From Macrostomum lignano (lineage: Eukaryota), in assembly GCA_002269645.1 (NCBI GenBank), contig NIVC01000001.1, positions 1,550,001 through 1,614,000 on the forward strand: a stretch of DNA of 64,000 bases. The letters run 5' to 3'. The number at the start of each line of letters is the position of its first letter. Position 1 is the first letter of the stretch. A program made the position numbers and the translations under genes. The notes beneath the pieces are model-generated. The model saw only the letters and a program-made list of their open reading frames with translations, did not search any database and had not been told where the DNA came from. Of this stretch, positions 2,001 through 41,171 are shown in pieces.

Positions 2001-2254
2001 CATCTGTGGTTTAATATTTAAATTTTACGCAAAGTGGCTGCTACACTACTGAACGAGTAGTATATGAACAATTTTTATGATTCTTATAGGAGACAGATTG
2101 AGAGGCAGATTACCCCCCCCCCCTACTTGATTTCCTCAGCTCAAGTCTGCCGCGGCGTAGCTAAGTTCTTCTGATAAGCTGTCCGATATTTCGTATATTC
2201 TTTTTCTCTGACTAAGTAAAAATCTTCATTCACTTCATTTTCTTTTCTTGCTAC

Positions 2255-4469
2255 TGATGTAACCGCCCTTGTCGCCTGTCCGCTCCTTAGAGAGACGAAC
2301 GCATGACTAGAGGGGGCAATGACCGTAGGCTGCCTATGACCGGGCAATGACCTGACGGACCTCCAGCACCAGACTGTCCCGCCCACATGATTGGTAGCTT
2401 TGGTAGCGCTTTGTGACCAGAGGGCCAAGGACCCACATGGACCCCACCTGTAGCTAAGGTGCAATAGTTGGTCACTCGGTCATAGTATGACCGAGTGGCT
2501 GCCACCACTCTATGTGACCTGGCGCACCTGGATCTTTCTACCAGACCTCTCGAGGCTAGAGCCCCGCCTGGGATGGTTACCAGGAGATTTAGGCTAACAG
2601 GGGAGACACATGCAGCCGAGTACAGGGACTCTGCTTGGGGCATGATCGGGAACTCTGGGCTCAATCTGGAGGATTTCTCAGCAGGGGATCCTTTGTGGCT
2701 GTGAGCGAGGCTGACTTACGACCTTGATTACTAAGAGTAGTATGAGGCGAACATGTACTGTCTACAGTTTAGATTGCTCAGGGCGAAGGGACGCGTCAGC
2801 ATGGGGTTACAACCTTCCTACTGCCATTCTGTGCCAAGACTCGCTAATCCCTCTACTGCACGCACACGCGGCCCCGCAGCACGCACTCACAGGCGGGCTT
2901 TGCACGGGGAGAGGCCATTAGCTTACCCAAACTTCCCTATGCTTTGCCACCCCGGGAGAAAGGCTTAGCAAGCCATGAGTGAAATGATGGTGAAAGAGTG
3001 AATAAGGATGAGGTTAGTTAATAGTTAATAATTCGGCCCTTAGGCAAATAATCAGGCAATTAGGCGGCTTCACTATTAAGTAAAAATACAGCAAAAGATA
3101 CGGTATTACAACTGGCTCAGCTCTCTAATCAGACAATGGAGAAAATAGGCAAACTCCGGATAAGCAAAGGCAATTAGAGCACAAATCAGTAACAGGAACT
3201 TACCGGCAGCTGCACAGAGAGAGAGAGAGAGAGAGAGGCGGAGTGACCGAGGGCGGCTGTAGGCTGCAGTCAGGCAGGCAGTGAAGCGGCGATGCGCTGA
3301 GGCGACGAGGCGCTGGTGTAGATCAGGCGAAGCTGATGATGCTGGGCGGTGTCAGACCGCTGGCCAATAGGCGAGCTCACTTGGGGAGCTGAAGATAACT
3401 TGGCGGTAACAGACCGCGGACCGGCAGGGATTCGTCTTATAGACGAATGGGTCAGAACTCAGTCTGACGGCAAGCCCAAAGAGGCGAAGAGTTCCAAAGA
3501 GTGCAGGATTCTCATGCCGAAATCGCTTCCTTTTATAGCCTTCCCAGCCGCCGCTCCAAGGTCGTTTCCATGACTCCCTCTCTCTGATTGGCTGCCGGCA
3601 GAATGACGTCAGAATGAGTCATGATGAGAAGCATGAGACCGGCATAGCAACATGAGAAATAGAGAAGTTGCGCAATCCGGAGGCGGGGTGGGGGGATAAT
3701 TGGCGCAGCGGGAGGTCGCGAAAGTGTTGCGTAAGCAAACATGGAGAACAATGGGGCTGGGGTCGAGAACAAAGGAATTGGAAATCGGGGGATAATTGGG
3801 GAGAATCGAGAACAATGGAAAAGTAAACATTGGAGAAAAGGTGATAATTAGGTGCGAAAACGAGAACAAAAGAAAGAGAAAATCGGAGAAAATGTGATAA
3901 TTGGTGGGGGTAAAGAGAACAAAAGAATCGAAAACGAGAACAATAGAAGCGGAGGTGGGGTGGGGGTCGCATGAGAAATTTGGGGCGGAGAACAATGGCA
4001 TGAGAAAAGGTTGCGCAAGAGAGGGGGATGAGTCATCGATGAGTCATCGAGGGGAAGAAGGGGTCACACGACTTGCGTCACCGTTTGGGAGTTTGGGAAA
4101 GGATGGGAGGACGGTGAGCACACAACATACTGTAAGTAGACGTAGAGAAAGAGGGGACAGCGCAAGAAAAGAGTGCAGAGAGAGACAAAAAGAGGGGGAT
4201 AGGGAAAGTACAAGAAGAATAGGGTGGAGTGCAGGGGAGATAAGGTAGAGGGGAGGGTACAGAGAGGGACAGGGAGCTCCGGAAAGGCAGGTGTGGCGGC
4301 AGGGGAGACGGAACCAAGGCAGCAGGGGGGTGCAGCAGAGCGGGAGTCTCCAGGCCGGGTCGGAAACCTGGCCGAGTCTCGACGGCTCTGTGCAGGGGGT
4401 ACATGGGATAGGAGGCACTTACGAAAAAGTTCCCATGCCCTATCCCGCGACCAGAGCGTGGTTACATCA
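2255..4469 (-). mobile_element. 2215-bp solo-LTR-like insertion (TG...CA, 10-bp terminal inverted repeat, 4-bp TSD CTAC)
   Basis: Starts TGATGTAACC (2255-2264) and ends GGTTACATCA (4460-4469). CTAC flanks both ends (2251-2254, 4470-4473). The joined flanks align with the uninterrupted paralogous sequence at ~9454-9680, which has a single CTAC. Strand inferred from internal promoter motifs. Confidence 0.8.
3531..3677 (-). promoter_or_regulatory. Pol II promoter inside the solo LTR (TATA, CCAAT, CRE, AP-1, C/EBP motifs)
   Basis: Minus-strand TATAAAA (3531-3537), CCAATC (3586-3591), TGACGTCA (3604-3611), TGAGTCA (3615-3621), TTGCGCAA (~3669-3676). Order and spacing fit a leftward-firing U3 promoter. 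Confidence 0.55.
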
Positions 4470-4933
4470 CTACTTTTCAGTAGAGCCGCTACGCTTCATT
4501 TCCTCAGGTAGAATCGCATGGTTCTACTTTTTGTGTGCTTACTATAATTGCTCCGCATCTTGCATGTCAGGAAGTGAGGTTCATATTATCTTCCAGAAAG
4601 CAGTTGATCTTCATTAGAAGCACATCGGATGGCAGACAATTTACGGAAATGGCAGTATCTGCGTGGCGCCTGTGCCTGTATGAATTATTTACATGTTGCT
4701 AGCATTGGGATTCTTGCCACGCAGAAACGATTCCTGATCTTCCTCGACACGTACTCCCATAAAAATCTGCACGGCATCCAACAGCCGCGGAGTCCATATA
4801 ATGGGTCGCTTCTTCATTGGCTACCGCTGCATGCAGCCTCTACAAACGCTTTAAAAGAAAAGAAACTTGCGAAGACGACTCACAAAAACTCAAACACCGA
4901 TTCAACTCACAAAACTCAAGAGAAACGAAAGAC

Positions 4934-5992
4934 ATGCTGACGGATCTGATTTTTTCTCTGCTGCAGGTGCTGTTTGCAGTCGCTGGTCGAGCCGAAGCTT
5001 CAAGCGGCTGTGCAACGCGCCACACTCTGCAGCCGCTGCACAGCGACTCCTGCGTGCCGGACGCCGACCTGCAGCGTCAACTGCGGCTGCCCAACGCGCA
5101 GCTCATGCCAGGCGCCTTTGATGCGAAGTCCTGCGCGATGGCCTGCGCTTTCCGACCGAGCGCGTGCGCGGTCGCTCAGTTCCGCTTCGTGGCCCGCCTG
5201 TGTCACGTGACTGCGGACCTGCCGCGACCTGCCAGCGAGGCGGAGGCGGACGGCACGGCGAGCCGCGGCGACTGCGTGGCGACGCTGCTGAGACGCGACG
5301 CTTCCGGAGCGACCGGCTGGCAGTTCGCCGCTCGGCTGTCGGCCTTCTTCGACTTCCGCATCTCCGACCGGAACCTCGGCATTGTCGGTGTCAGCTCGCC
5401 GCTCTCCGCGCCGGCGCGGCTCGGCGGTACCGCCATGCGCAACGCGTCGGGCGCCGTGCTGCCCGGTCGGCTCGACTCGTTCGTGAAGATCGGCGTAGCG
5501 CCGCCGGGCTTTCAGGCCTTTGAATCGTCGTCGAAGGAGTACACCTTCTTCTTCAGCATCGCGGGAATGCCCAGCGTTTCTAGAGGCCAGACGTACCTGC
5601 TTCGAATCGTGCCTTCCAGCAATCCAACCAGTAAATTCTGCTCGTTCGCGTATTTTTCGGATGGTGACATGAGGTTCGCCAACTTGTTCACTGAAACAAT
5701 CGGCTACGTGACCGTCAACTCAATGCCGCTGGTTGCAAAGCAGAAGTTTTTTATTGGTGCAACCTATAGCAATGCTACGGCTGCCTCCACTGCTCTCTTC
5801 AATGGCACGGCTTACTCTGTCACGCAGTATAACAGCTACACTCTCAGTGCCGACACTGTTTTCGACGAGATCCGGCTTGGATCAGAAGGAACAGGTGATG
5901 TATACTCTTTTAAGGGAACAATAATCTGCTTTGCCATGGCTTCAGTGGCCCTGTCGCCTGAAGAATTCCAGGCCTTGGGCTCCGTCTGCTAA
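4934..5992 (+). CDS. secreted PAN/apple-like + LamG/ConA-like jelly-roll protein, copy 1 (352 aa, intronless)
   Basis: ATG 4934 begins signal peptide MLTDLIFSLLQVLFAVAGRAEA. Cys pattern SCAMAC..RPSAC......LC fits PAN/apple. C-terminal FIGATY..LFNG..DEIRLG..FKGTIICF..ALSPEEFQAL fits Laminin_G_3/ConA-like domains. Stop TAA 5990-5992. Confidence 0.8.
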   Translation: MLTDLIFSLLQVLFAVAGRAEASSGCATRHTLQPLHSDSCVPDADLQRQLRLPNAQLMPGAFDAKSCAMACAFRPSACAVAQFRFVARLCHVTADLPRPASEAEADGTASRGDCVATLLRRDASGATGWQFAARLSAFFDFRISDRNLGIVGVSSPLSAPARLGGTAMRNASGAVLPGRLDSFVKIGVAPPGFQAFESSSKEYTFFFSIAGMPSVSRGQTYLLRIVPSSNPTSKFCSFAYFSDGDMRFANLFTETIGYVTVNSMPLVAKQKFFIGATYSNATAASTALFNGTAYSVTQYNSYTLSADTVFDEIRLGSEGTGDVYSFKGTIICFAMASVALSPEEFQALGSVC

Positions 5993-8104
5993 CCTTGCAG
6001 ACGTGTTTTTGGACTTTAATTTGCTAAAGATCTTACGGACTGAACAGAAAGGATACAGCTTCACACCAGCTAGTTTAACCTCCATCATTGTAAGGTCAGC
6101 TTCTGTCCTAATTCCTCTATTTTGATTATCTCTAGGCAACCAAAATGTGTAGCTAAAGTTGCTTGTCAACCGATTGAAGCTATTACAGAAACCACTTATA
6201 AGCCTCAAAGGTATTAAAATGTCTACAGACATAAACAACAAACCAACCGTTGTATGTGAATGTCAGCGTTTGACCTGGACACAAATTAGATTCATTGATT
6301 AGAATTCATTAGAACTTGAATGAGGAGAGGAAGAACCTTGAATGAGTTTATTCAAGCGGCCACCGAGTTTCTACATCTCTACATCTCTAGTCTCTATGTT
6401 TGCAGGCATCCCTACAAAAGATTACACGTAGGAATGCCTGCAAACACAAATAGAGATGTCTCCTTTTTTGAACTTTCCACAAATTATGCATGTCTATGTC
6501 TGTTAATGGTTCGATTTAACAATCTGGTTCTTAATCCCATTTCGTTTTGAGCAAAGGTTCCTAACTAGTGGCAGACAATGAAATATATTGAGCAGGGTCG
6601 AGGCTATTATGCGGCATTCCAGGTGTCTCTGAAGGTTTCAACGATATCAGCGAATAGAAATGCATCAGTGAAAACATATAGCATATGACAAACAAACAGC
6701 GCCCCTCGTTATGGAGCCATCAAAGAATTTGTTAAACATTTTTGAATAAACTACAGGTAGCTTCTGACCTCAACCTTGACATCTCAGCAATCCACCCGTC
6801 AGCCTTGACATATCAGAAATTCCTTATGAGCCTTGACATCTAGCAATTCCCCAATGAAACTTTTATGTTCGAAATGACTTCTTTCATTTTTAAAATGACG
6901 CTTCTTTTTGTTTGACATGATGCTTCTTTTTTGTTTGACATGACGCTTCTTTGATGTCGTATACAAAAATTTTATTAGATGGCGATCTAAAGGGGGAAGG
7001 CTATTTGGCCATTTTTCCCAGAAGCCTCGTCATGACAACTACTTTTTTAAAACATATTGTTTCTGTTGCTGTTTTCTTTTTTCGATAAAACAAATCGTTG
7101 CTGTTGCTTCTTACCTTTCTTCTCACTAAACCTAATCATTGCTGTTTTTGCTTATCTTTGCAACTTTTTGATTTCTGGAAAAAATTTTCTGCGAAATTTT
7201 TTCGTTTAGGAGGCTAAGTTTTCAGTTGATTCTTGCTAAACTACGTAGTTTCGTAGCAACTTTTAATGAGGTAGAGATCTGAAGTGAAGGATTACGACTG
7301 AATATTTCACTGCATTGTCTAAACAGAACTACGCAAATATACAATAGCTAAATCAAACTAGCTAAACGGAAAACCAACGGAAGCCAAAAAAACGAATTTT
7401 TAAAGACAAAAGAGTTTTCTTCCCAGGAAATGGCTAGATGCGTTTCCTGACTCCACATCGATTTCTTTTGCCAGAAAACAATGCAGATAGGAGCTAGCTG
7501 GCTACTGTAACTCTCATAGGAGATGCCACGACGACTCTCACAACTATTCATACTGGGCTACATGTACTACTATACGATAATTCTAACTACTAGACCCAGT
7601 TTGTCTAGCTACAAGAGTATAGAGATAAAAGACTGATCGGCTCACTTCTGAAGTGTAAAGATATGTACAGATTTTTTCGGCAGCAATTTCGTAAGCTGAA
7701 GCTGCGTAGTGGCTGAAAGTAAAGAAAATAAAGCTGAAAGTATCTGTCTATATCGTTATTGTATCCTTTTGGCACTTTGTCCATGGCACTTTGAAAGAGC
7801 AGTAAAGATCATTAGTCAATCGTCTATGGTAACTGGAGAGGATAGTAAAGACGACTAGCCAATCTGTCATGAATTTATTCTCTAGTGGATTTTGAGCTTT
7901 CCATAGCTACTTCCATAATTCTATATTGAGAATAGAAAAATGAGCGGTATCGTTTCTCGTCGCAAGAAAAACTTGCGACGAAAATATTCCTGGTGGAGAA
8001 ATATTCGGACTCTCCACGGACGATTTAAGGCTTTTGTCACCCGAGAGTCGATCAATCTCTTTGGTCTGGAGATTGACAATTTGGATGTGTGGTCCAGTAC
8101 CAAA

Positions 8105-8462
8105 GTGCTGCCTGAGCTGCAACTAGCAAAGATCTGCAAACGCTGGACCGGACTGACAATGAATCTGTGCCGAAATCGACCGACACTCAACGAAAACTTC
8201 ACGTGACAAGGTTCCGCCAGTTCCTCAATGAGAAAGGGACTTTAAACGGGAGTTTTAGCGTGTACCGGATCGGTTCCTGAACGGTTATCTGAGGCTTTTC
8301 TACTCCTCTCTTTAAAAGCTGGATGGAGCACACTACGTGCTGACGTCTCTCATCTGTTTTCGTGCGGCCATTTAACGGCACCTGGAATCCCCGTCCGTCA
8401 AACGCCAGGTGAACATCACTACCTACCGGAGAATTATTCAAGCGTTGCAACGGAATCATTGT
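8105..8462 (+). pseudogene. Crypton-type (DUF3504/KIAA1958/ZMYM-like) tyrosine recombinase transposon relic
   Basis: Across frameshifts and stops reads DLQTLDRTDNESVPKSTDTQRKLHVTRFRQFLNEKG.. then FLNGYLRLFYSSL*KLDGAHYVLTSLICFRAAI*RHLESPSVKRQVNI. This matches the CryptonA N-terminal pattern (pknT..fl..L..Fy...k.dG..Y..sSL....aai.RhL). Confidence 0.6.
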
Positions 8463-8504
8463 CTAACTTATGGGTGACAGAAGAACAAAACTTTGTTTTC
8501 CAAA

Positions 8505-8740
8505 GGGTCGGCAAAGCCAACCCTTAAAGGCAGAGAGTGTACATGTACATGCCTGACGATTAGAAAGTCAGATGGCCACTGTACACCCCGTGTGAGCGGT
8601 GTATGAGTGCGTGTCTGTGTACCGCAGTATTGTTGCATTTGTGTGTGCTCAGGAGTCAGCGTGATGGGCAGAACTGCCTCAGCGATGGTTGCGGGACGAT
8701 GTCGCCGAAAGCGTTGCGCCATGGGTGCCCACATGCCCTC
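8505..8740 (+). mobile_element. dispersed repeat family copy A, beginning with a GGCAAAGCC hairpin (possibly Helitron/Helentron-like non-autonomous)
   Basis: AAGGGTCGGCAAAGCCAACCCTT hairpin, then GTACATGCCTGACGAT and ATGGGCAGAACTGCCTC. Aligns with the reverse complement of 19350-19550. Confidence 0.45.
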
Positions 8741-9154
8741 CTGCAATTATTTTTACTTAGGCTTACAGGAAGTGCAAACTGGGAGAGCACTTCAAAACGA
8801 TCTACTCGACTTACTTCGTTCTCTTTGACATGTACATGTAGTTTAACTGGAGCTGTAGTATGGAACACGGACAGTTAAAGCAGAAGGACGCTGCACTTTA
8901 TTTTCTTAAAAATGAGCCTGGGGCCGCTTAGGAACGTCATGTTTATCGTATCGCCAGTGCATTCAGTATGCTTTCGAAAAAATCTGATTCTTGTCTGCTT
9001 AAACCAGTGAGCCGAAGTCAAGGCAGTTGGCACGAGAGGCGCAGGTTCGAGCCTGACCCGATTCAAGCAAAGAAAACTCGACAGAGAGAGGTAGAGTTTG
9101 AGCGCGTCAATTCAACGAGCCAAGCCATGCATAGCCGATTTTGCATTTGAGTCC

Positions 9155-9300
9155 TGAACACCGAAAGCTTCCTGATCATCGACAGTGGAACACCGAGCTG
9201 CCCATCCAGTTACCAAGCTTCCTGATCATCGGCAGTGGAACACCGAGCTGCCCATCCAGTTACCAAGCTTCCTGATCATCGACAGCAGAACATCGAGCTG
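9155..9300. repeat. 50-bp tandem repeat, ~2.5 copies
   Basis: GAACACCGAGCTGCCCATCCAGTTACCAAGCTTCCTGATCATCG(A/G)CAGTG repeated with period 50. Confidence 0.85.
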
Positions 9301-10574
9301 TATGGCTACTGTAGCGCCGCCCCGCCGCAGCCCGTGGCCAGTGAACTCACATGGCGTCAAACCCGCCGATGTGCACAACGAGCGAAGCCTACCGTCAAAA
9401 ATACAAGCCGTCAGAGGCGTGTTTGAGCATTCATTTATATACTTATATGTATACGATATTTCCTATATTCCTGTTTTCTGACTAATTCAAAATCTTTATT
9501 TATCTTCACTTTCTTTTATTGCTACTCTCTTCAGTAGTGCCGCAACGCTTCATTTGCTCAGGTAGGCTCTCGTATGGTTCTACTTCTTGCGTACTTTAGT
9601 ATAATTGCTCCATGTTTGCACGAGTGGGTGAGGTTCATACTCTTTTCCAGATAGCAGTCGATATTCATTAGAAGTAGCTCGTACATCGACTCGATGAGAT
9701 AAACGAGCGATTTTGAGGAAGAAAATTTAGGGATTACGGCAGTACCTGTCATACGTCGTACGGCAGGCTCTCCTAAAAATACACAAGTGCAAGAGCCAAT
9801 AGCCTCCGGTTCTAGACGGTCTCCAGGCAAACTCATTAACCTCGGCCTCTCCGTTCGTCTACGATTAACTTAGAGAATTTAGGATAAGGGAAAAACTGTA
9901 ATAAAAATTGGGTAGCACAGGTTGCACTAATAGGAGTCGTGCCTCAAAAGAACCTGCAGTCAAGACCATCGCACATTGTAAGAAATACTAGTAATGAGGT
10001 AATGGGGTAATGTGGGTATTTTACTATCTCCTAATATTTGTTAAACTGTCATTTGTGCTACTCCAATTAATTTTTTGATATTAAGGATTGGACAAGTCAT
10101 TTTTCTCTAAATTCCTGTCCTTATTCTTTAATTTCTTATGCTATGATAAGGGGAATGTCTGGGCTCCTAGTGGCAGAGCTAGCGAACTACATGACATCAG
10201 TATCTACAAAGATTAAAACAAGAATAAACCAGTAGTCTCGATCACACGGGAGCCATTCCACTAGCAATGGGATCCATGGACACACTTTCTTTCGAGGTGG
10301 GCATGTTCGAAGTCGAGGCCTGAAGTCGACTCAGTATGTGTGGGGGGGGGGGGAACAGAAGATCGTACCAAGGACAACTAGTGGTCCTTGGATCGTCCAT
10401 GTCGTAACAAAACTGCACGGCATCCAACAGCAGCGGAGTCTATTAGCAGGTCGCTTCTTCATTGGCTACCGCTGCATGCAGCCTCGGAAAACGCTTTATA
10501 AGGGTACCAAACTTGCGAAAACGACTCAAACACCGATTCAACTGACTTAACGTGACTCAAGAAAAACAAACGAC

Positions 10575-11645
10575 ATGCAGACGGATCTGATTTTTCCTCT
10601 GCCTCTGCTGCAGCTGCTGTTGCTGGCTGTCGCTGGTCGAGCTGAAGCTGCAAGCGGCTGTGCAACGCGCCACACTCTGCAGCCGCTGCACAGCGACTCC
10701 TGCGTGCCGGACGCCGACCTGCAGCGCCAGCTGCGGCTGCCGAACGTGCAGCTCATGCCGGGCGCCTCGGACGCGAAGTCCTGCGCGATGGCCTGCGCTC
10801 TCCGACCGAGCGCGTGCGCGGTCGCCCAGTTCCTCTTCGTCGCCCGGCTGTGTCACGTGACTGCGGAGCTGCCGCGACCGGCCAGCGAGGCGGAGGCGGC
10901 CGGCACGGCGAGCCGCGGCGACTGTGTGGCGACGCTGCTGAGACGCGACGCTTTCGGAGCGACCGGCTGGCAGTTCGCCGCTCGGCTGTCGGCCTTCTTC
11001 GACTTCCGCATCTCCGACCGGAACCTCGGCATTGTCGGTGTCGGCTCGCCGCTCTCCGCGCCGGCGCAGCTCGTCGGTACCGCCATGCGCAACGCGTCGG
11101 GCGCCGTGCTGCCCGGTCGGCTCGACTCGTTCGTGAAGATCGGCGTGGCGCCGCCAGGCTTTCAGGCCTTTGCTTCGTCCCCAAAGGAGTACACATTCTT
11201 CTTTAGCCTAACGGGCATGCCGAATATCCCGACTGCAAATCTCCATCTTCTGCGAATCGTGAATTCCGACAACCCCACCGGACCGTTCTGCTCATTCATG
11301 TTCTTCACTAGCGACAGCAAGCTGAAGTTCACCAACTTTTTCTCTGAAACAATCGGCTACGTGACCGTCAACTCGATGCCGCTGGTTGCTCAGCAGAAGT
11401 TTTTTGTTGGTGCAACCTATAGCAATGCTACGGCTGCCTCCACTGCTCTCTTCAATGGCACGGCTTACTCTGTCACGCAGTATAACAGCTACACTCTCAG
11501 TGCCGACACTGTCTTCGACGAGATCCGGCTTGGATCAGAAGGAACAGGTGATGTATACTCTTTTAAGGGAACGATAATCTGCTTTGCCATGGCTTCAGTG
11601 GCCCTGTCGCCTGAAGAATTCCAGGCCTTGGGCTCCGTCTGCTAA
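10575..11645 (+). CDS. secreted PAN/apple-like + LamG/ConA-like protein, copy 2 (356 aa, intronless)
   Basis: Signal peptide MQTDLIFPLPLLQLLLLAVAGRAEA. Near-identical to copy 1 except for one internal block. Confidence 0.82.
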   Translation: MQTDLIFPLPLLQLLLLAVAGRAEAASGCATRHTLQPLHSDSCVPDADLQRQLRLPNVQLMPGASDAKSCAMACALRPSACAVAQFLFVARLCHVTAELPRPASEAEAAGTASRGDCVATLLRRDAFGATGWQFAARLSAFFDFRISDRNLGIVGVGSPLSAPAQLVGTAMRNASGAVLPGRLDSFVKIGVAPPGFQAFASSPKEYTFFFSLTGMPNIPTANLHLLRIVNSDNPTGPFCSFMFFTSDSKLKFTNFFSETIGYVTVNSMPLVAQQKFFVGATYSNATAASTALFNGTAYSVTQYNSYTLSADTVFDEIRLGSEGTGDVYSFKGTIICFAMASVALSPEEFQALGSVC

Positions 11646-12759
11646 CCTTACAGCCGCTACGAGCGAACAAGCTTACGGACTGAACAGAAAGAAACTCGGG
11701 ATATCTTTTATGACGTGATTTTTAAATATTCGTGACTACAACCCTGAGCGTTTTTTATTGCTTTATGGCTGTGTCTTTTGATGCTGTTTATCCTTTCTTC
11801 TTGTGTTAAAACAATTTCCTTCTTTGTGTCTTTTTCGTGTTAAAATTTTATGTTGTTTAATTAATTTTTAAAGCTTAAAATAGTTTTTTGGTTAATAAAT
11901 ATTTCCCGTTGCTGTCTTTTGTTTAAGTTTTTGTTACTGTTTATCTTAGGTTTTCTTTTCGTTAAAGCAAGTCGTCGCTGTTGCTGCTTTTTTTAAAACA
12001 AAAATTTGTTGCTGCTATTGGAAAAATATTGCCGATGTTGTTATCTTTTTTCTCGTCTTTTATTCTTGTTGACACTTGTAGGATACGAACAATTAAAATT
12101 TTTTTTCTTATAATTTTTAATAACACATTAACTCCGCATCTTGTTTTATCTGGTTTTTAGAGAATATAGACTAACGCTAATTTCAGACTCTGCTTCGCAC
12201 CTTTTTATTCGTGAAAGATGCATTCTGGACTTTATTATTAAGAACTTAAAGAAGCTTACTTTTTATGGCAGACTTCAGAGGCTCTTCGTACGATAGTCTT
12301 GGAAGGGGAAATTTTTATAGATTAAAAAGATAGACACTCTCCTTCAATTCAATTTTTTGGATTTTAAAAAAATTAAATGAAATAAATTTATGAGTGCAAT
12401 TTAATGAACTTAAACTTTAGCTAAATCTCAACTAAATCAACGAAATCATTAAATGTACTAATAATTTTATATCAAAATTAAAATCTAAAATGTACAATGA
12501 AATCATTAAAATTTTACATGTACACAGCATACTTGCATACTGCCTAGCCTAGTGCTTTCCTCTCGCAACTGCATAGTTGAGTGTGGAAACTTCCCAAAAA
12601 GTGGATGCAAGTTGCAACACAAAACATTTGCTTCCTCTTTCTCTCTCCCATTTACAAGCTTAAAGAAGATGCAGTTTTTGTTCGTTATTATATAGGAAAG
12701 CCTAGCCCGGCTTAAAACCAGCCAATTAAGTATAGCCAAAGTATATTATAGTATAGGAA

Positions 12760-13860: not shown

Positions 13861-14101
13861 ACCAGGGGCGCCAGCACCAGGGGCGCCAGCACCAGGGGCG
13901 CCAGCACCAGGGGCGCCAGCACCAGGGGCGCCAGCACCAGGGGCGCCAGCACCAGGGGCGCCAGCACCAGGGGCGCCAGCACCAGGGGCGCCAGCACCAG
14001 GGGCGCCAGCACCAGGGGCGCCAGCACCAGGGGCGCCAGCACCAGGGGCGCCAGCACCAGGGGCGCCAGCACCAGGGGCGCCAGCACCAGGGGCGCCAGC
14101 A
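13861..14101. repeat. 15-bp minisatellite (CCAGGGGCGCCAGCA)x16
   Basis: Perfect tandem copies. Reverse complement of the unit family at 23245-24089. Confidence 0.95.
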
Positions 14102-14640
14102 CTTCATTTGGTCACGTATTACTTACTTAATTTGAGTGGTTGCCAAAGCTATCGCATGGGAGCGTCATGTGCTTTTACTAAGCCGATGGAGGGAGGGCCA
14201 CGGCTCCCTTCCCCCTCCACTGGCTACGTCCCAGACACGCACAGAGTTCGGTATGGTATTGGTATGCAAGGGCACACTACAGTGGCTGATCGTATTGGGC
14301 GAAATAAAGTTTCAATCGTTAAAAAATATTGAGAGAAGCATTAGCCACAAAACAAATGCATTATTAACAAATCTATAAAGAAATTCGATTATAAAGAATC
14401 CAAGAAATAACTAATATATTTTCATGATCATCATATTAACTTGTGACCTTCGTCACACTTAGAAGCAATCGATAATAATGTTACAGGAAAATGTTGAATT
14501 TTACCACGGCTTCCCCAAGCAAGCGTAAAAACAAAGCTTTACTTGTGTTACACAAATTTGCACGATTTTGAATCGGCAATCAAAAAAGCAACAAAAAGCA
14601 CAAAAAAGTGGCCCAGGAAATTTTCTACCATTGTCGGAAT

Positions 14641-14955
14641 GCCCAGTGCCCGTCAGTTGTCAGATCAAACTGCCCAGTGCCCGTCAGCATTGTCAGATCA
14701 AACTGCCCAGTGCCCGTCAGCATTGTCAGATCAAACTGCCCAGAGTGCCCGTCAGCATTGTCAGATCAAACTGCCCAGTGCCCGTCAGCATGTCAGATCA
14801 AACTGCCCAGTGCCCGTCAGCATGTCAGATCAAACTGCCCAGAGTGCCCGTCAGCATTGTCAGATCAAACTGCCCAGTGCCCGTCAGCATGTCAGATCAA
14901 ACTGCCCAGTGCCCGTCAGCATGTCAGATCAAACTGCCCAGTGCCCGTCAGCATT
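14641..14955. repeat. 32-35-bp minisatellite whose last unit is the STPG1 C-terminal coding sequence
   Basis: Unit GTCAGATCAAACTGCCCAGTGCCCGTCAGCATT, ~9.5 copies. On the minus strand it encodes NADGHWAV*. Confidence 0.9.
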
Positions 14956-17211
14956 ATAGGAGAAGTTCTGCTTGGCTGGCACCTCAGGCTGGTAGTGCGC
15001 CGGACCCGGCAACGACGTGGCGTCGCCCACAGCCCGGCCGGCCCAACGCGACGTGTTGCTAAGGAACATGGAGCTGCTCATGTAGTGCTTGGACACTGGC
15101 CTTGGCGCCAGCTCGTACTGGCCCGGTCCCGGCAGCGGCGCCTGCGGCGGCAGTGGCAGCGCGGGAGCGGACAGGCACAGGTAGTGCTGCATGGGGAACT
15201 GGAAGCCGCCCCGCTTGGCCTGCCTGTCCGGCTCGTGATCGTACGCACCGGGCCCCGGATTGTCCGTCGGCTTCGGGCCCGGACGGCGCGGCCCGGACGG
15301 ACGGAAGCAGGAGACTGGGGCGCGGGAGGCTTCGCCGATCAGGCGGTCGGCGCGGGTCACGTCGTAGGCTCCGGGGCCGGGTCGGCGGGCGGCGTCGCCG
15401 TGGCCAATGGGCTCGCGACCGGATGAGGATCTGCGGGCAGCGGGGTCCACTCTCTCAATGTCTACTGTGTCCACTCTCTCTCTAATGTCTACTGTGTCCA
15501 CTCTCTCTCCAATGTCTACTGTGTCCACTCTCTCTCATATCTACTGTGTCCACTCTCTCTCCAATGTCTACTGTGTCCACTCTCTCTCTAATGTCTACTG
15601 TGTCCACTCTCTCTCTAATGTCTACTGTGTCCACTCTCTCTCTAATGTCTACTGTGTCCACTCTCTCTCTCTAATGTCTACTGTGTACACTCTCTCTCTA
15701 CTGTCTACTGTGTCCACTCTCTCTCTAATGTCTACTGTGTCCACTCTCTCTCTAATGTCTACTGTGTCCACTCTCTCTCTCTAATGTCTACTGTGTCCAC
15801 TCTCTCTACTGTCTACTGTGTCCACTCTCTCTCTAATGTCTACTGTGTCTACTCTCTCTCTAATGTCCACTGTGTCCACTATCTCTCTAATGTCTACTGT
15901 GTCCACTCTCTCTAATGTCTACTGTGTCCACTCTCTCTAATATCTACTGTGTCCACTGTCTCTAATGTCTACTGTGTCCACTGTCTCTAATGTCTACTGT
16001 GTCCACTGTCTCTTATGTCTACTGTGTCCACTGTCTCTCTAACATCAACTGTGTCCACTCTCTCTCCAATGTCTACTGTGTCCACTCTCTCTAATGTCTA
16101 CTGTGTCCACTGTCTCTAATGTCTACTGTGTCCACTGTCTCTTATGTCTACTGTGTCCACTGTCTCTCTAACATCTACTGTGTCCACTCTCTCTTTAATG
16201 TCCACTGTGTCCACTCTCTCTCTAATGTCTACTGTGTCCACTCTCTCTCTAATGTCTACTGTGTCCACTCTCTCTCTAATGTCTACTGTGTCCACTCTCT
16301 CTAATGTCTACTGTGTCCACTCTCTCTACTGTCTACTGTGTCCACTCTCTCTCTAATGTCTACTGTGTACACTCTCTCTCTAATGTCCACTGTGTCCACT
16401 ATCTCTCTAATGTCTACTGTGTCCACTCTCTCTCTAATGTCTACTGTGTCCACTCTCTCTCCAATGTCTACTGTGTCCACTCTCTCTAATGTCTACTGTG
16501 TCCACTCTCTCTAATGTCTACTGTGTCCACTCTCTCTCTCTCTCCTCTCTCTAATGTCTATTGTTTCCACTCTCTTTAGCACAATATTTATTGAAAAATT
16601 AATTTCAATCCAATCTGAACTAACTTGAACACGCTAGCCAGGTCGCGAGTTCGATTCTCCCTGAGCCGAGCCAGAGCGTTGAGCGTATTGTACCGGTTCG
16701 GCCCCGGACCGTCCGAGGCCGCTCCAGCCGGTCGGGGCACCGCGATCGGCGGGTGGAAGCTGCTGGTTGCGCTGGCCCGATTGAAGTCGGCCCTGCTGCC
16801 GACTCTGCCGGTGTCGCCGATGTTGTAGCCGGCGGGCCCGGGACCGACTGGGACGCCGCCGCCGCCGCCTCCGTCGGTCCGTCGGACGGTTTTGCTGGCG
16901 AGGCCGCCCGTGCCGCGTTTGCCGTAGGACGGCGAATCTGTTGCAACCGAGGAGCCACCGCTGCCCAGAGCGTAATAATTTGGCGCCGGAGTCACGTGAT
17001 TGGACAGGTCGTAGTTAAACCGCTTAGCGGTGGACATGAAACCTTTGCTGTCGGCCGTGTCAATCACGACCGTCTGGTATTTGCTGGGGATTGAGGAGTT
17101 CGGCTTGGCGGCCGAGTAGCCTTTTCGGACACGGTTCTGATTGCCGTTTGGGTTGCCATGGATACGCTTGACAACTGAGTCATTGTGTAAGATTTGTACG
17201 CTGTCGGACAT
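14929..17211 (-). CDS. STPG1: sperm-tail PG-rich repeat protein 1-like (362 aa); exons 17211-16625, 15430-14929
   Basis: SSIPSKY..KGFMSTAKRF, PGPxxY repeats, and C-terminal LPLPPQAPLPGPGQYE..HYMSSSMFLSNTSRW..LPGPAHYQPE..KQNFSYN match STPG1/MAPO2. Donor AA|GTTAGT and acceptor CCGCAG|A, both phase 2. Total 1089 nt. Confidence 0.85.
15445..16575. repeat. ~25-bp intronic minisatellite GTCCAC(TC)nTAATGTCTACTGT
   Basis: Fills almost the whole STPG1 intron, with a variable (CT)n core. Confidence 0.95.
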
Positions 17212-19349
17212 CGTGTCTGGAATAAATGGAGGACAACCCAACAGTCAAGCAGTTTTTTGTTCCTTTCGCTGAGCCATGACCTCAAACGAATATAGCAGCA
17301 CTAGGGATAGTGGGTAGGTACAACTGCATTAAGGCATAAAATGTAAGCTCATATTTCACAAACTTATTGGGTTTGTTTAAAAGTTTAAACTTTGTTTAAA
17401 GTTTAAAACGAAACGATTCGACACCAGCAATTGGTAAAATATCCATAGTCTATTATTTTCTCCAACAAGAATATAGCCAATCTATTTAGGAGCAATGAAC
17501 CTAAAAATAAAAGTATAATATTTTGTATATTTCTAGTCTTCTTTTTCTGGTAGGAAAGCAAAAATCAGCCTCAAATGCATTTATTATTCTCTATACAGAA
17601 ACAAAAAACACTTTTCTAGATAGCAATGCCTCATTTTAATGTGCCAAATAGTTACACATGTTAACAGCGAATGCATTCATGAGATTACTAGACAGCAACT
17701 TTTAATACATAATAAGAATAACTTTGACAAACTTGAGAACTTAAACTTTAATCGAAGTTGTCTCATCCTACCAGGAAAAAATATTCCACGATTCTTTTCA
17801 ATTAAATTTCTAAAAAATTATATACAGTTTAGAATTTCTGTCCTGTTCTACAACTCTAACCCCCTAGTCTTCACTTTGTTGTGTTGTTCATCAAAGTAAT
17901 TTAAATTGATCCAGTCTAGCTCCAAAAGGGAAACCTTTTAAAGAAAAGCTTTGGTAATAAATAAACAGATTCTACTATTTCCATCCGTTAATGGAAATAT
18001 ATTATTTGTATGACTAAATATGACTTGGCAAACATGAGAAAAATGGGCATAAGTTCCCACTGTCTAATATATATCAATTCGCTTTCTTTCTAAACGAAAT
18101 AAAATCAGTTCATTATTTCACAATTTTTAAGAAGCTTTGCCATCCGTTTTAAACATTAAAAACCTTTTTAATAATTTATTTGGCAAGTCAAAATCAAGAT
18201 AATTCGCAAAAGTTTCATTTTTTTTCGAAGCAAACATAGCCCTTAGAAAATGAGCGATCCGGCGGCATAAAATATATTCGGCCCATTTATGAAGTTGAAG
18301 AAATGTCCTTAATAGCAACAAATAAAGCCGTGAATAAGGTTACAACTTTAACTTTGTCGATTAATAATTTTATTTTAAATTTAAATCATTTCTCTACGTA
18401 AACGAAAATTTTATATCGGCATAAAAATAAATATTCAACTTTTGTTTTTCTGTTTACTTCGTAAACAGATGAAGTTTTTTGACAAGCTTTCCCGGTGGTC
18501 CATTAACGGGTACACGTGAAAATTTGAATGAGTGAGTATATCTGAGCCGCGAGTCGAAGTAAGGACTAATTTAACGATAAATAGTCGTTCTTATGGGTCT
18601 AAGAAGAAGCAATTGGACGCAAAACTTCATTGACTTGCTGGACTTACTGGTATACTGGAAACACTTGTAGTGGTAGAGTAAAAATGGAGGAAAGTACGAG
18701 GGTGGGAAAGGGCAAACTTGATGGAATAAAGCTAAGACAAATATGAAAATTTCCAGTATATACAAAACAATGAACAGATTCGATTTTCTTATCATTTGAG
18801 ACATGCCCTCACAATGCTGTCAAAAAGTATAGGGGGGGGGGGTAATTGTCTCACTGCAAATGCTCCCATCTCATGCTATGTACAGTAGTGTTACATGTAC
18901 GTCGATCATGTACACATGTACGCGTGGTCATTTCATCCGCAAGAAAGTTACAGTACTTACGGTACATTGTTGCCCAATATTTTTTAGGACCCCCCTCATG
19001 CACATGTATATATAAGATTACGAGCTAAATATACTTACATGAAAGCAGGACTGCATTCTTACAAACCGATCTGCAGATGTGATCACGGGACATAATCAGC
19101 AAACCAACTACAGGTATAGCTGTACTGAGACCCCATATTCTCAAATTTTGCATTGTTATAACTAATTAAATTCACGGTACTTTACGAAGTCTATAGCTGT
19201 TTTTTTCTGTGGAATGCTTCTTTCTCAATAGTTTAAATGCATGTACTACTGTAGTCAATGTAGTAGTAGACTCTAGTACTACTACAGTCGTCCTTAGGGT
19301 TCATATCCTGCACATAAAGCATGATGTAGTAGTTAGACCTACAGAGCTT

Positions 19350-19685: not shown

Positions 19686-20112
19686 AAGCGCGATTTAAGT
19701 TCTTAATTCTGAAGTTCAAGTTCTCCAGTACTCAAGTTCACTGTTTTGTAAATATTGAGCCACTTCTAGACTCCCGCGAAAGACTCTGCAATGTCGCAAC
19801 TTCATGAAATCCAGTTTCAACCAGCTAGTGCCTATCGTGCAAGAAGCCATGCAGCAGGTAGAGATGCACTTTATGGCTAAAAAATTCACAAGAGGACAGA
19901 TACTTCACAAGTCATCCCAAGCCTTCCCGCGACTGTTTTTCCCTCATTCTAACCCTAATTGGGCCATTGGCTAGATGGGCACTCACGGCTCTTCAAGGCT
20001 CACTATGGGGGGGGGGCTTTCATGCTACACGCAGTCGAGTATTTATCCAGATCCGCTTAGAAACAATGGAGAGAATTTTGCCAATCCGTTTCAGCTCCCG
20101 CAAGGCAATCAT

Positions 20113-21171
20113 ATGGCGGCTCTCGCAGCCATCGCTACTCTGCTGCTGTACGCCCAGCTGTCGCCAGCTTCAGCGAATGGCTTCAGCGGCGGCTGCCAGG
20201 CCCGGCACTCAGTCCGACCGCTGCACAGCGACTCCTGCGTGCCGGACGCCGACCTGCAGCGTCAGCTGCGGCTGCCCAACGCGCAGCTTCTGACGGGCGT
20301 CTCCGATGCGGAGTCCTGCGCGCTGGCCTGCGCTCTCCGACCGAGCGCGTGTGCAGTCGCCCAGTTCCGCTTCGTAGCCCGGCTGTGTCACGTGACTGCG
20401 GAGCTGCCGCGACCGGCCAGCGAGGAGGAGGCAGCCGGCACGGCGAGCCGCGGCGACTGCGTGGCGACGCTGCTGAGACAGGGCGGAGATGCTCCGACCG
20501 CCTGGTCGCTCGCCTCCCGACTCAAAGTGTTCATCGACTTCCGCGTCTCCGAGTTGAACCTCGTCGCCGGGTCGGCTGGCTGGCCGCCGGCCGCTCAGCT
20601 CACTGGCGCCGCGTCTCGCAACTCCAGTGGCGCCTGGCTGCCCGGCCTGCAGACCGCCCACGTGCTGATGCGCCTGCCGCCTCCCGGCTACCAGGCGGTG
20701 GCCGCTGCCAGCCAGGAGTTCGCCTACTTCTTCAAGGTGCTGGCCGACCCGCCAGCATCGGCGAGCTCGCAGCGCCACTTCATGCGCATCCTGTCAGCCA
20801 GCGACGGCAGCCAGCTGAGCGCCTTTGTCTATACTGTGGGCGGCCGGGTCCGCTTCTCCAACCTGTTCACCCGGCCGGATCCGTTCGAGGCCGTCGCCGA
20901 TGTTGTCTACGCCGGCGGCAGGAGTCTCGCCTTCGGCGTGGCCTACTACAACTCCACGGGCCGCGCTCGGGTGTACTTTAACGGCACCCTGATGAGTGCG
21001 ACAACATTCACTCCGACAGATACGCTGAACGCCGCTGTCCAGTACGACGAGATCCGATTGGGCTACGCCGGTTCCGAATCGATTTGCCTCAGGGGCTATC
21101 TAGTGTGCTTCGCTATGGCGCCCGCGGCCCTGACTGGGGATGAGTTCCAGCAGCTTAGCGACAGGTGCTGA
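20113..21171 (+). CDS. secreted PAN/apple-like + LamG/ConA-like protein, copy 3 (352 aa, divergent LamG)
   Basis: ATG 20113 begins signal peptide MAALAAIATLLLYAQLSPASA. PAN module near-identical to copies 1/2. LamG keeps FIDFR, YFNGT, YDEIRLG and CFAMAPAALTGDEFQQL but is otherwise diverged. Confidence 0.82.
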   Translation: MAALAAIATLLLYAQLSPASANGFSGGCQARHSVRPLHSDSCVPDADLQRQLRLPNAQLLTGVSDAESCALACALRPSACAVAQFRFVARLCHVTAELPRPASEEEAAGTASRGDCVATLLRQGGDAPTAWSLASRLKVFIDFRVSELNLVAGSAGWPPAAQLTGAASRNSSGAWLPGLQTAHVLMRLPPPGYQAVAAASQEFAYFFKVLADPPASASSQRHFMRILSASDGSQLSAFVYTVGGRVRFSNLFTRPDPFEAVADVVYAGGRSLAFGVAYYNSTGRARVYFNGTLMSATTFTPTDTLNAAVQYDEIRLGYAGSESICLRGYLVCFAMAPAALTGDEFQQLSDRC

Positions 21172-21234: not shown

Positions 21235-21790
21235 AGGTAGCTTAGTAGTATAGTAGTTTAGTAGTATAGTAGCTTAGTAGTATAGTAGCTTAGTAGTATA
21301 GTAGTTTAGTAGTATAGTAGTTTAGTAGTATAGTAGCTTAGTAGTATAGTAGCTTAGTAGTATAGTAGCTTAGTAGTATAGTAGCTTAGTAGTATAGTAG
21401 CTTAGTAGTATAGTAGTTTAGTAGTATAGTAGCTTAGTAGTATAGTAGCTTAGTAGTATAGTAGCTTAGTAGTATAGTAGCTTAGTAGTATAGTAGCTTA
21501 GTAGTATAGTACCTTAGTAGTATAGTAGCTTAGTAGTATAGTAGTTTAGTAGTATAGTAGCTTAGTAGTATAGTAGCTTAGTAGTATAGTAGCTTAGTAG
21601 TATAGTAGCTTAGTAGTATAGTAGCTTAGTAGTATAGTAGCTTAGTAGTATAGTAGCTTAGTAGTATAGTAGCTTAGTAGTATAGTACCTTAGTAGTATA
21701 GTAGCTTAGTAGTATAGTAGCTTAGTGGTATAGTAGCTTAGTATTGTAGCTTAGTAGTATAATACCTTAGTAGTATAATACCTTAGTAGT
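21235..21790. repeat. 16-bp minisatellite AGCTTAGTAGTATAGT
   Basis: About 34 tandem copies starting ~60 bp after the copy-3 stop. Confidence 0.95.
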
Positions 21791-22162
21791 ATATTATTTT
21801 AGTAGTCAAGTAGCTTAAAACGAACTATTCGGAATTTAATTTGCGCCACTCAAACAAAAAAATATTATTGAATTTTTCGATTTCAAAATCGTACTTGCTT
21901 TGTCTTTTTTTCAACAATTAATTTGTCAAACTGGTTCTGTCGCCAAAAAACAGAATTAAAGTTATCCATCAAAACATGCATAAAATGTAATGAACTTTTC
22001 ACTGAAATACTTTTCTGTCGTAGCTAAACTCTTTGAGGCAGTTTTAATAACTGGGAAAGAAAAGACATGATGTTTTTTTAAATTTTGTGCACTGTCTCTG
22101 CCAGACAAATTATTCTGGGCGATCTAAGCAAGTTTCTATTTTCTTATATATTTTTTATATGA

Positions 22163-22424
22163 CAGTCAGTCAGTCAGTCAGTCAGTCAGTCAGTCAGTCA
22201 GTCAGTCAGTCAGTCAGTCAGTCAGTCAGTCAGTCAGTCAGTCAGTCAGTCAGTCAGTCAGTCAGTCAGTCAGTCAGTCAGTCAGTCAGTCAGTCAGTCA
22301 GTCAGTCAGTCAGTCAGTCAGTCAGTCAGTCAGTCAGTCAGTCAGTCAGTCAGTCAGTCAGTCAGTCAGTCAGTCAGTCAGTCAGTCAGTCAGTCAGTCA
22401 GTCAGTCAGTCAGTCAGTCAGTCA

Positions 22425-22475
<51 letters not shown>

Positions 22476-22778
22476 AGTCAGTCAGTCAGTCAGTCAGTCA
22501 GTCAGTCAGTCAGTCAGTCAGTCAGTCAGTCAGTCAGTCAGTCAGTCAGTCAGTCAGTCAGTCAGTCAGTCAGTCAGTCAGTCAGTCAGTCAGTCAGTCA
22601 GTCAGTCAGTCAGTCAGTCAGTCAGTCAGTCAGTCAGTCAGTCAGTCAGTCAGTCAGTCAGTCAGTCAGTCAGTCAGTCAGTCAGTCAGTCAGTCAGTCA
22701 GTCAGTCAGTCAGTCAGTCAGTCAGTCAGTCAGTCAGTCAGTCAGTCAGTCAGTCAGTTAGTCAGTCATTCAGTCAGT
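22163..22778. repeat. (CAGT)n microsatellite, ~150 units
   Basis: Near-perfect tetranucleotide run with rare variants. Confidence 0.97.
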
Positions 22779-23244: not shown

Positions 23245-24089
23245 GTGCCCAGGGCGCCCTTTGTGCTGGCGCCCTTTGTGCTGGCGCCCCTGGTGCTGGC
23301 GCCCCTGGTGCTGGCGCCCCTGGTGCTGGCGCCCCTGGTGCTGGCGCCCCTGGTGCTGGCGCCCCTGGTGCTGGCGCCCCTGGTGCTAAAGCCCCTGGTG
23401 CTAAAGCCCATGGTGCTAAAGCCCCTGGTGCTAAAGCCCCTGGTGCTAAAGCCCCTGGTGCTAAAGCCCCTGGTGCTAAAGCCCATGGTGCTAAAGCCCA
23501 TGGTGCTAAAGCCCCTGGTGCTAAAGCCCCTGGTGCTGGCGCCCCTGGTGCTGGCGCCCCTGGTGCTGGCGCCCCTGGTGCTAAAGCCCCTGGTGCTAAA
23601 GCCCATGGTGCTAAAGCCCCTGGTGCTAAAGCCCCTGGTGCTAAAGCCCCTGGTGCTAAAGCCCCTGGTGCTAAAGCCCATGGTGCTAAAGCCCATGGTG
23701 CTAAAGCCCCTGGTGCTAAAGCCCCTGGTGCTAAAGCCCCTGGTGCTAAAGCCCATGGTGCTAAAGCCCCTGGTGCTAAAGCCCCTGGTGCTAAAGCCCC
23801 TGGTGCTAAAGCCCCTGGTGCTAAAGCCCCTGGTGCTAAAGCCCCTGGTGCTAAAGCCCCTGGTGCTAAAGCCCCTGGTGCTAAAGCCCCTGGTGCTAAA
23901 GCCCCTGGTGCTAAAGCCCCTGGTGCTAAAGCCCCTGGTGCTAAAGCCCCTGGTGCTAAAGCCCCTGGTGCTAAAGCCCCTGGTGCTAAAGCCCCTGGTG
24001 CTAAAGCCCCTGGTGCTAAAGCCCCTGGTGCTAAAGCCCCTGGTGCTAAAGCCCCTGGTGCTAAAGCCCCTGGTGCTAAAGCCCCTGGT
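23245..24089. repeat. 15-bp minisatellite CTGGTGCT(GGC/AAA)GCCC, ~56 copies
   Basis: Blocks of GGC, AAA and CCAT variants, with a homogeneous 3' end. Confidence 0.95.
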
Positions 24090-30200: not shown

Positions 30201-30806
30201 GGTGGTGTAGATGGCCGTGAAAGTGTACTCCACTATCTCAGAGCTGCTGTTTCTGGCCATGAAGACGCAGTTGCAGATGATGGCCAGAAGCACCAGCAGG
30301 GAGAAGGCCGGGTGCGTCAGCACGAAGATCGCCCCTCTGCGCACCGGGTTGAAAGGCGACAGGACGAACAGCGCGTTGGTTGCTGAGAACCGGAAGATGG
30401 TCTTGTCCTTGGCGATCACAACAAAAGTCATCTTGTCCGCGTAGAATTCATCAATATCTTCCAGAGGAATTCCGCTCAGCTTCTTTACCGGAAAAATATC
30501 AGACATCGATGGCGGCAGCTTCATCCCGGCTTCCAGCTTTGCGTTTGGCCGACGCTCCTCAGACGAGCCCGGCTGGTGGGCATGCTGCTGTTGCTGCTGC
30601 TGAGGCAGCGCCGGAGGCCCGAGCCCGGTGGTCGCGTTGCCAGCCTCGGCGGCAGCGAGCGGCGTGGCGGAGTTGGGAAACGCTGAGGCGTGATGCGCCC
30701 CAAGCGCCTGGCCAAGGAAGCTGAGCTCCTCCTGGCGACGTCGGATCTTGGCCAGAGACTCTGGCACAAACTGACGAAACACGCCGGGCTGGGGCGCTGA
30801 TGGCAT
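24298..30806 (-). CDS. voltage-gated sodium channel alpha subunit, Nav1 (DEKA) type, ~1819 aa; exons 30806-26810, 26278-25107, 24588-24298
   Basis: Four repeats with S4 helices. Pore loops QDYWEN / GEWIES / YKGWT / SAGWDG give DEKA, and the inactivation motif is MFMT. Splice junctions ACAG|GTTGGT..CCACAG|GA (phase 1) and CAG|GTAAGC..TCGCAG|ATC (phase 0) keep the frame. C-terminal EF-hand and IQ-like region. Confidence 0.95.
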
Positions 30807-38715: not shown

Positions 38716-38831
38716 TCCTAGCCCACAAAAACCTTATCGAGTCAACCGCAGCTCTCCAGAATGCAAATAACCAGTCCGAGGGCCCCCAGCTGCAGACCAG
38801 ACGGAGACCCCCCTGTAAAACACAGAAGCCG

Positions 38832-41134: not shown

Positions 41135-41171
41135 CTAAAATAAATTACACATTTATCTCCAAAATCTCTGA

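Follow-up and report, generated by a model that had tools for sequence, protein, structure and literature searches.

The 64-kb window considered here (contig NIVC01000001.1 of the flatworm Macrostomum lignano, positions 1,550,001 to 1,614,000) carries a same-strand tandem cluster of three intronless paralogs, c1, c2, and c3, which constitute an undescribed, lineage-restricted gene family. The first two are nearly identical along most of their coding sequence (CDS), but this near-identity is interrupted by a sharply bounded block that is strongly diverged and yet retains the reading frame. Taking together the block, a tract coding for a PAN/apple-like domain that is shared by all three copies, the edges of homology, and a step in the G+C content at third codon positions (GC3), we propose that these are likely to be the outcome of a single process, namely, patchwise non-allelic (inter-paralog) gene conversion.

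The mosaic itself is genuine, and its statistical support is unambiguous. Homology of c1 with c2, as delimited by blastn, extends from 4763 to 6003 in the former and from 10409 to 11656 in the latter, and their global alignment has 25 substitutions in the 541 bp upstream of the block (4982 to 5522) and 6 in the 302 bp downstream of it (5691 to 5992). These are exactly the counts from which a sequence-only reading of this DNA had described near-identical flanks (about 25 differences over about 540 bp and about 6 over about 300 bp). Within the block, 61 substitutions and one 3-nucleotide indel in 171 columns reduce the identity to 63.7%; the frame is kept across the indel, and the block peptides quoted in that reading are correct to the letter. 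Its sharp borders, 5523 to 5690 in c1, were also recovered by an unsupervised two-rate maximum-likelihood scan of all breakpoint pairs, the optimum of which falls on the same coordinates and improves the log-likelihood by 68. Counted per column, differences amount to 64/171 within the block and 33/854 outside it, a clustering with a hypergeometric tail of 2.8e-31 (about 1e-25 once corrected for all windows). The highest count reached by any 171-column window over 20,000 permutations was 35 differences, versus the 64 observed.

The kind of change accumulated in the block points to its age. By Nei-Gojobori counting, the proportion of synonymous differences (pS) between c1 and c2 in the block is 0.68, the synonymous divergence (dS) is about 1.3 to 1.8 (1.78 by this method), and the nonsynonymous divergence (dN) is 0.33, giving a dN/dS ratio (omega) of about 0.19, which is approximate as the dS is saturated. 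In the flanks, dS is 0.15 in the PAN part, 0.03 in the N-terminal part of the downstream jelly-roll domain, and 0.06 in its C-terminal part, with pS between 0.03 and 0.14. The synonymous excess in the block over the flanks (Fisher P = 2e-15) is as strong as that at replacement sites, and block and flanks do not differ in their proportion of nonsynonymous to synonymous changes (35:25 versus 14:16; P = 0.37). Even where the residue is unchanged between the copies, as in 32 codons of the block, synonymous differences occur in 13 (pS 0.62), and they do so in every subsegment, strands and loops alike. The ratio of transitions to transversions is 28:33 for the block but 19:12 elsewhere, a shift that fits old versus young divergence. 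Because the synonymous sites have diverged as much as the amino acid sites, the block is best read as a patch of far deeper ancestry than its flanks rather than as a product of fast in-place evolution under positive selection. Positive selection alone was rejected as a cause on account of the saturated synonymous sites, and a mobile insertion was likewise rejected, as the block is in frame and homologous across c1, c2, and c3.

A broader version of in-place divergence would do without recombination and attribute the block to a local mutational hotspot, to relaxed constraint, or to point mutations driven by positive selection. It could draw on the fact that c1 and c2 remain mutually nearest in the block and that a donor was not found in the window. 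However, saturation of synonymous sites is beyond the reach of selection that acts on amino acids, and the codons of conserved residues have a pS of 0.62 versus 0.03 to 0.14 a few bases away. A hotspot would require a roughly 10- to 50-fold elevation of the mutation rate, restricted to 170 bp and abruptly delimited in c1 and c2 alike, and the PAN tract, described below, indicates that recombinational mosaicism occurs in this very cluster. We hence regard in-place divergence as highly unlikely.

The two block versions themselves appear to be under purifying selection (omega about 0.2), with the cores of the strands kept and the loops differing between them. Therefore, c1 and c2 most likely encode functional proteins, which differ mainly in two surface loops. 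More generally, all three paralogs look functional, because their reading frames are intact, the 170 bp upstream of c1 and c2 are 86% identical, and the 9-mer CATTGGCTA precedes each start codon. This 9-mer occurs exactly three times in the window (both strands), once per paralog and 115 to 148 bp 5' of the ATG, and is probably a promoter element common to the three genes.

The block is one of several strata of divergence in the cluster. At least four can be distinguished between c1 and c2: the promoter and signal peptide region (about 85% identity), the PAN part (94%), the flanks of the block in the jelly-roll domain (97 to 98%), and the block (64%). The third copy presents the opposite pattern, with its PAN-coding part showing 85 to 97% nucleotide identity to c1 and c2 (dS 0.26 to 0.28) and its remainder only 40 to 60% (dS from 0.8 to saturated). 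The distinction between the PAN tract and the rest of c3 is marked (Fisher P = 8e-11), and sliding identity reveals sharp edges. In this tract the three copies are nearly equidistant, with informative sites uniting c1 and c2 in 23 cases, c1 and c3 in 6, and c2 and c3 in 9. We interpret it as a probable second, independent conversion stratum common to all three copies; patchwise conversion thus appears to operate in the cluster. The homology of c1 and c2 stops about 10 bp past the stop codon despite 98% identity in the adjoining CDS, and further upstream only short colinear patches of 80 to 86% identity can be recognized, most of the intergenic DNA being unalignable. Along c1 and c2, GC3 is 0.83 to 0.90 before the block, 0.70 within it, and 0.55 to 0.58 after it, versus 0.77 to 0.88 throughout c3. 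This step may have been left by conversion biased toward G+C in the 5' half of the genes.

Patchwise non-allelic conversion among the three copies would leave the segments of one gene pair with different coalescence times, and there are two routes by which the block could have come to be. One possibility is that both of its sides were homogenized by conversion, while the block was left out; once diverged, it would block the extension of heteroduplexes, making the pattern self-maintaining even without selection. Alternatively, one copy might have had its block overwritten by a short stretch of conversion whose donor was a remoter paralog lying beyond the window. The first route is favored by the unalignable state of most of the intergenic DNA and by the lack of a donor in the window, and the second by the non-coding patches of the duplication unit, which are 14 to 20% diverged, far below the silent sites of the block. 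We see the two routes as about equally probable. Homogenized flanks or a swapped-in block were also the alternatives offered in the sequence-only reading. Its underlying notion of different histories is borne out by dS, which rises from between 0.03 and 0.15 on either side to about 1.8 within the block, whereas its suggestion that the block is kept diverse is not, given the dN/dS of about 0.19. As for the polarity of the exchange, c3 is equidistant from both versions and so favors neither direction (the block of c1 shares 21 sites with it and that of c2 shares 17).

Several points weigh against the conversion interpretation. When the window was searched with tblastn and word-7 blastn, neither version of the block had a donor in it and all matches lay in c1, c2, and c3 themselves, so that a swap-in stays hypothetical. 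Moreover, c1 and c2 are mutually closest in the block (dN 0.33, versus 0.61 to 0.70 to c3). The evidence is thus solely one of rate or branch-length heterogeneity, because the three sequences show no change of topology there. The domain assignments of the window proteins, too, all lie below the Pfam thresholds. Finally, the mosaic might be an artefact of assembly or polishing, be it a chimera of paralog reads or a homogenization of the flanks by mis-mapped polishing reads, and near-identical tandem paralogs amid many minisatellites are indeed the kind of DNA in which assembly is error-prone. Nevertheless, neither copy loses its frame in the block despite 61 substitutions and an indel of one codon, 31 differences remain dispersed over the flanks, and each copy has its own distinct flanking intergenic DNA. 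A chimera would, in any case, still need a real third paralog with the block concerned. An artefact is therefore very unlikely in our estimate.

The lack of introns in c1 and c2, together with the exon-like size (168 to 171 bp) and sharp borders of the block, raises another scenario, in which a parent gene with mutually exclusive exons produced two isoforms, each of which was then retrocopied to give one of the two genes. However, they lie in tandem on the same strand and have in common about 170 bp of non-transcribed-looking upstream DNA with the CCAAT motif as well as colinear patches. A poly-A remnant is not evident past the stop codon, a homolog in M. lignano is likewise single-exon, and the flanks comprise several divergence strata rather than one. 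These observations make a retrocopy origin exceedingly improbable.

The proteins encoded by the cluster are small and plausibly secreted, with a signal peptide, a PAN/apple-like domain, and a Laminin_G_3/ConA-like jelly roll, and they may bind in a lectin-like manner. All three possess a hydrophobic, signal-like N-terminal segment (MLTDLIFSLLQVLFAVAGRAEA/SS in c1). The core cysteine consensus of PAN/Apple domains is recognizable in each of them (SCAMACAFRPSACAVAQFRFVARLCHV), with the spacing C-x3-C-x6-C-x(10-12)-C and an aromatic residue after the third cysteine, the core cysteines reading as SCAMACAFRPSACAVAQF...LCHV. Pfam profile matches are suggestive: Laminin_G_3 (PF13385) scores 18.5, 16.5, and 14.0 bits in c1, c2, and c3, respectively, all below the gathering threshold of 27.6, and PAN_1 (PF00024) scores 17.1 bits in c2 and 18.3 in c3, with no match in c1, again below the threshold of 21.4. 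The architecture proposed in the sequence-only reading, a secreted PAN-LamG protein, accordingly holds as a plausible one, as judged from these sub-threshold matches, the jelly roll predicted by AlphaFold2 (AF2), and relatives whose PAN_1 and Laminin_G_3 scores reach or approach the cutoffs.

The AF2 model of c1 residues 121 to 352, computed from a seven-sequence alignment, is of moderate confidence (mean predicted local distance difference test [pLDDT] score of 66.8, predicted template modeling [TM] score of 0.74) and has about 14 strands; the full-length protein with a three-sequence alignment gave no usable model (pLDDT 36). Foldseek searches with the domain model yielded 383 PDB matches at E <= 0.001, the best of which are all lectin-like jelly rolls (probability 1.0, TM score 0.5 to 0.66), and the predicted structure conforms to a two-sheet beta-jelly-roll (ConA-like) fold. 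At the sequence level, a PDB search with c1 found no match, and a PDB profile search found borderline LamG_3/CBM40 matches alone (E = 0.02 to 0.09). Among the structural neighbors are the lectin-like HCN subdomain in the receptor-binding domains of clostridial neurotoxins, the lectin domains of sialidases, and the accessory domains of GH43 enzymes (Foldseek E of 1e-8 to 1e-7), which share the ConA-like jelly roll with c1 but only 10 to 16% identity. This likeness is at the level of the fold and carries no sign of a common or toxin function.

In the model, the block covers four strands (YTFFFSIA, TYLLRIVP, CSFAYFS, and DMRFANL), two loops, and one turn. Sixteen of its 24 replacements, as well as the indel, fall in predicted loops, and the 8 in strands include conservative I/L, M/L, R/K, Y/F, and L/F exchanges. 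The block thus maps neither to a purely buried region nor purely to a ligand loop in this prediction. The sequence-only reading had further placed the ligand face of LamG/ConA jelly rolls in the loops that connect their central strands. This is an overgeneralization; ligand-binding sites differ among LNS domains, pentraxins, and lectin domains.

A more ambitious interpretation is that the block is a specificity region kept diverse by balancing or diversifying selection, in a variable secreted recognition family with a role in immunity, mucus, adhesion, or mating. The concentration of replacements and of the one-codon indel in predicted loops is in keeping with this, especially in the loop GMPSVSRGQTY that follows strand YTFFFSIA, where 8 of the 11 residues differ. 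So is the secreted, lectin-like appearance of the proteins, and the block region is the most indel-rich of the domain among distant relatives (gap fraction 0.27, versus 0.10 to 0.15 elsewhere). Against it, the block has a low dN/dS and a ratio of replacement to silent changes no higher than that of the flanks, which also speaks against the label hypervariable used in the sequence-only reading. Further, comparison with c3 reveals no excess of divergence in the block over the C-terminal part of the domain: c1 and c3 are 34.5% identical over the former and 35.4% over the latter, with the N-terminal part at 43.2%, and dN versus c3 is 0.61 to 0.70 in the block and 0.68 in the C-terminal part. With three paralogs aligned, divergence is hence largely even, an outcome that the sequence-only reading had itself named as counting against its proposal. 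Among the distant relatives, conservation is slightly lower in the block (0.20) than in the N-terminal (0.23) and C-terminal (0.275) parts, suggesting that the block is a plastic region of the fold rather than an outlier. Loop-biased change is typical of any beta-sandwich under purifying selection, and the family has three members in view and very few relatives among 1.8 billion representative proteins. Diversifying selection is thus an unlikely explanation.

The notion of the block as a cassette fares no better, as the blocks match only the three full genes in the 64 kb, with no array of partial, promoter-less donors in the window. It could still be imagined that the block is an exchangeable specificity module, with short tracts from diverged paralogs elsewhere shuffling loop blocks into the homogenized scaffolds of a larger, flatworm-restricted family. 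This we consider quite improbable; were it the case, such a module would provide combinatorial germline (conceivably somatic) diversity for the recognition of partners, pathogens, or substrates. At present, the block opens no new kind of diversity-generating system, and gene conversion among paralogs suffices as the likely explanation of its distinct age.

Relatives of the family are scarce. Word-index protein searches with c1, a six-sequence family alignment, or a LamG-only alignment recovered either nothing or PAA50913.1 alone. An exhaustive HMMER profile search of 1.84 billion representative proteins returned eight matches, of which about four are credible, namely, two M. lignano proteins, an ENA metagenome fragment, and one Ptychodera protein with a PAN-EGF-2xLamG_3 architecture; a metagenome scan for family members found none. 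The closest database relatives are M. lignano proteins named "Apple domain-containing" in UniRef (about 25% identity), and the M. lignano relatives as a whole share only 22 to 35% identity with the window proteins. PAA50913.1 (identical to PAA88388.1; 338 aa) resembles c1 to c3 in its size, signal peptide, PAN-like cysteine motif, LamG_3-like domain, C-terminal '..LS.xEFQxLxxxC' end, and single-exon gene but, unlike them, has no tandem paralog within 10 kb. Two M. lignano contigs (NIVC01003538.1 and NIVC01000193.1) encode it in identical form, in each case beside an amino acid permease gene, which is consistent with duplicated genome segments in this species. A0A1I8FMH4 (UniRef, M. lignano) and the ENA fragment are partial sequences, the latter with the C-terminal motif of the family, LS.EEFQ.L...C.

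The profile scores of these relatives strengthen the domain assignments. Laminin_G_3 scores 27.4 bits in PAA50913.1, just under the threshold of 27.6, and 107 in Ptychodera flava XP_070535747.1; PAN_1 scores 18 to 20 bits in PAA50913.1, A0A1I8FMH4, and a further relative, P0010, and 27.0 in XP_070535747.1, which is above threshold. The Ptychodera protein has PAN followed by LamG_3, as in c1 to c3 (family-profile E = 5.6e-8). It differs in being larger, with PAN_1, EGF, and two Laminin_G_3 domains, and in its identity of about 19% in the LamG part; hence, it is a distant superfamily relative and not an ortholog. Literature searches found no function or expression data for the M. lignano relatives, and nothing relevant on Macrostomum gene conversion or on flatworm PAN/laminin G proteins.

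The coordinates of the cluster and of the repeats around it are collected in Table 1. The c3 protein is about 50% identical to those of c1 and c2 overall, with near-identity in the PAN part. The two non-coding patches upstream of c1 appear to be what is left of a once larger unit of tandem duplication; they are separated by about 2.2 kb in c1, and their counterparts are adjacent in c2 (9454 to 9674). The intervening DNA in c1 (2255 to 4473) is of low complexity and purine/pyrimidine-skewed and looks like an insertion or expansion. Antisense open reading frames (ORFs) over the block (5512 to 5691 and 11162 to 11335, minus strand) were considered and taken as chance, their mutual conservation being no greater than sense-strand homology explains.

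Table 1. Positions of the paralogs, their segments, and the repeat arrays in the 64-kb window
Feature	Position	Strand	Description
c1 (copy 1)	4934..5992	+	Intronless CDS, 352 aa; ATG at 4934; signal-peptide-like N-terminus, PAN/apple-like Cys motif, LamG_3-like jelly roll
c2 (copy 2)	10575..11645	+	Intronless CDS, 356 aa; protein identity to c1 86-87%
c3 (copy 3)	20113..21171	+	Diverged paralog, 352 aa from internal ATG; ORF opens at 19975; intronless
c1 divergent block	5523..5690	+	Codons 197-252; four predicted beta-strands and intervening loops; from breakpoint scan
c2 divergent block	11173..11343	+	Counterpart of c1 block, longer by one codon
c1 promoter/5' untranslated region, conserved	4763..4933	+	86% identity to c2 10409-10574; CATTGGCTA at 4815-4823
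c2 promoter/5' untranslated region, conserved	10409..10574	+	CATTGGCTA at 10460-10468
c3 CATTGGCTA (reverse CCAAT box)	19965..19973	+	148 bp upstream of c3 ATG
c1 PAN-coding tract	5015..5300	+	85-97% identity to c3 ~20198-20483; ~94% to c2 ~10665-10950
Upstream non-coding patch	4473..4620	+	Colinear with 9527-9674, 80% identity
Upstream non-coding patch	2184..2255	+	Matches 9454-9526, 85% identity
Minisatellite arrays	13861-14102, 15450-16539, 21237-21817, 22163-22778, 23253-24089, 33720-34266, 38003-38716, 39510-39999, 41155-42506		
Minisatellite arrays, continued	45821-47037, 47210-49264, 53641-54762, 55238-55916, 56586-57193, 57825-58370, 59800-60588, 60994-62173, 63623-63997		

The window as a whole is animal nuclear DNA, which also codes for a PRKCSH/MRH-domain ORF, an RRM protein, and a SHIPPO-repeat gene. 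Opposite-strand ORFs lie between c2 and c3 (14929 to 17241, minus), so that an unrelated gene separates these two members of the cluster; the ORF at 14929 to 15528 (minus) matches the SHIPPO (sperm-tail PG-rich) repeat, and that at 16588 to 17241 (minus) has no Pfam match. Downstream of the cluster, an intron-poor gene at 25095 to 30806 (minus) encodes a four-domain voltage-gated cation channel (four Ion_trans domains and a Na_trans_assoc-like domain) in very long exons, one of them of 1375 aa. The gene for a protein with two RRMs (60589 to 63000) contains a 1.2-kb array of a 30-bp minisatellite, in frame within one long ORF, and this array probably represents either intronic sequence or a repeat expansion separating the two RRMs. 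Minisatellite arrays are unusually dense in the window (more than 20, with periods of 4 to 54 bp and each up to 2 kb) and give rise to many spurious long ORFs on both strands. Rfam searches detected no RNA family anywhere in the 64 kb.

Secreted proteins with lectin-type domains encoded by clustered multigene families are well known among the diversified immune molecules of invertebrates, such as the FREPs of Biomphalaria, the VCBPs of amphioxus, and Sp185/333 of sea urchins, in which recombination or conversion between members adds to diversity. The present cluster resembles these systems in its domain type and tandem arrangement. However, they have tens of members, hypervariability or an omega above 1, and immune-linked expression, whereas the block of c1 and c2 has an omega of about 0.2 and, relative to c3, is no more variable than the rest.

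A closer parallel is offered by gene-conversion mosaics in tandem duplicates, such as the human gamma-globin genes HBG1 and HBG2, RHD and RHCE, and the red and green opsins. The mechanism is thus well known, and the modestly new element here is the undescribed, unannotated family of secreted PAN and LamG-like proteins. In contrast to the human cases, this family is uncharacterized, with three copies visible. In other respects the c1/c2 pair behaves alike: near-identity is broken by sharply bounded segments of another age, the change involves silent as well as replacement sites, similarity drops abruptly where the converted unit ends, and there are several strata in a single pair. If these strata are indeed due to conversion, the identity of paralogs is therefore not readable as duplication age in this genome, and c1 and c2 would furnish a clean, small example, comparable to HBG1/HBG2, of how gene conversion gives one tandem pair several ages.

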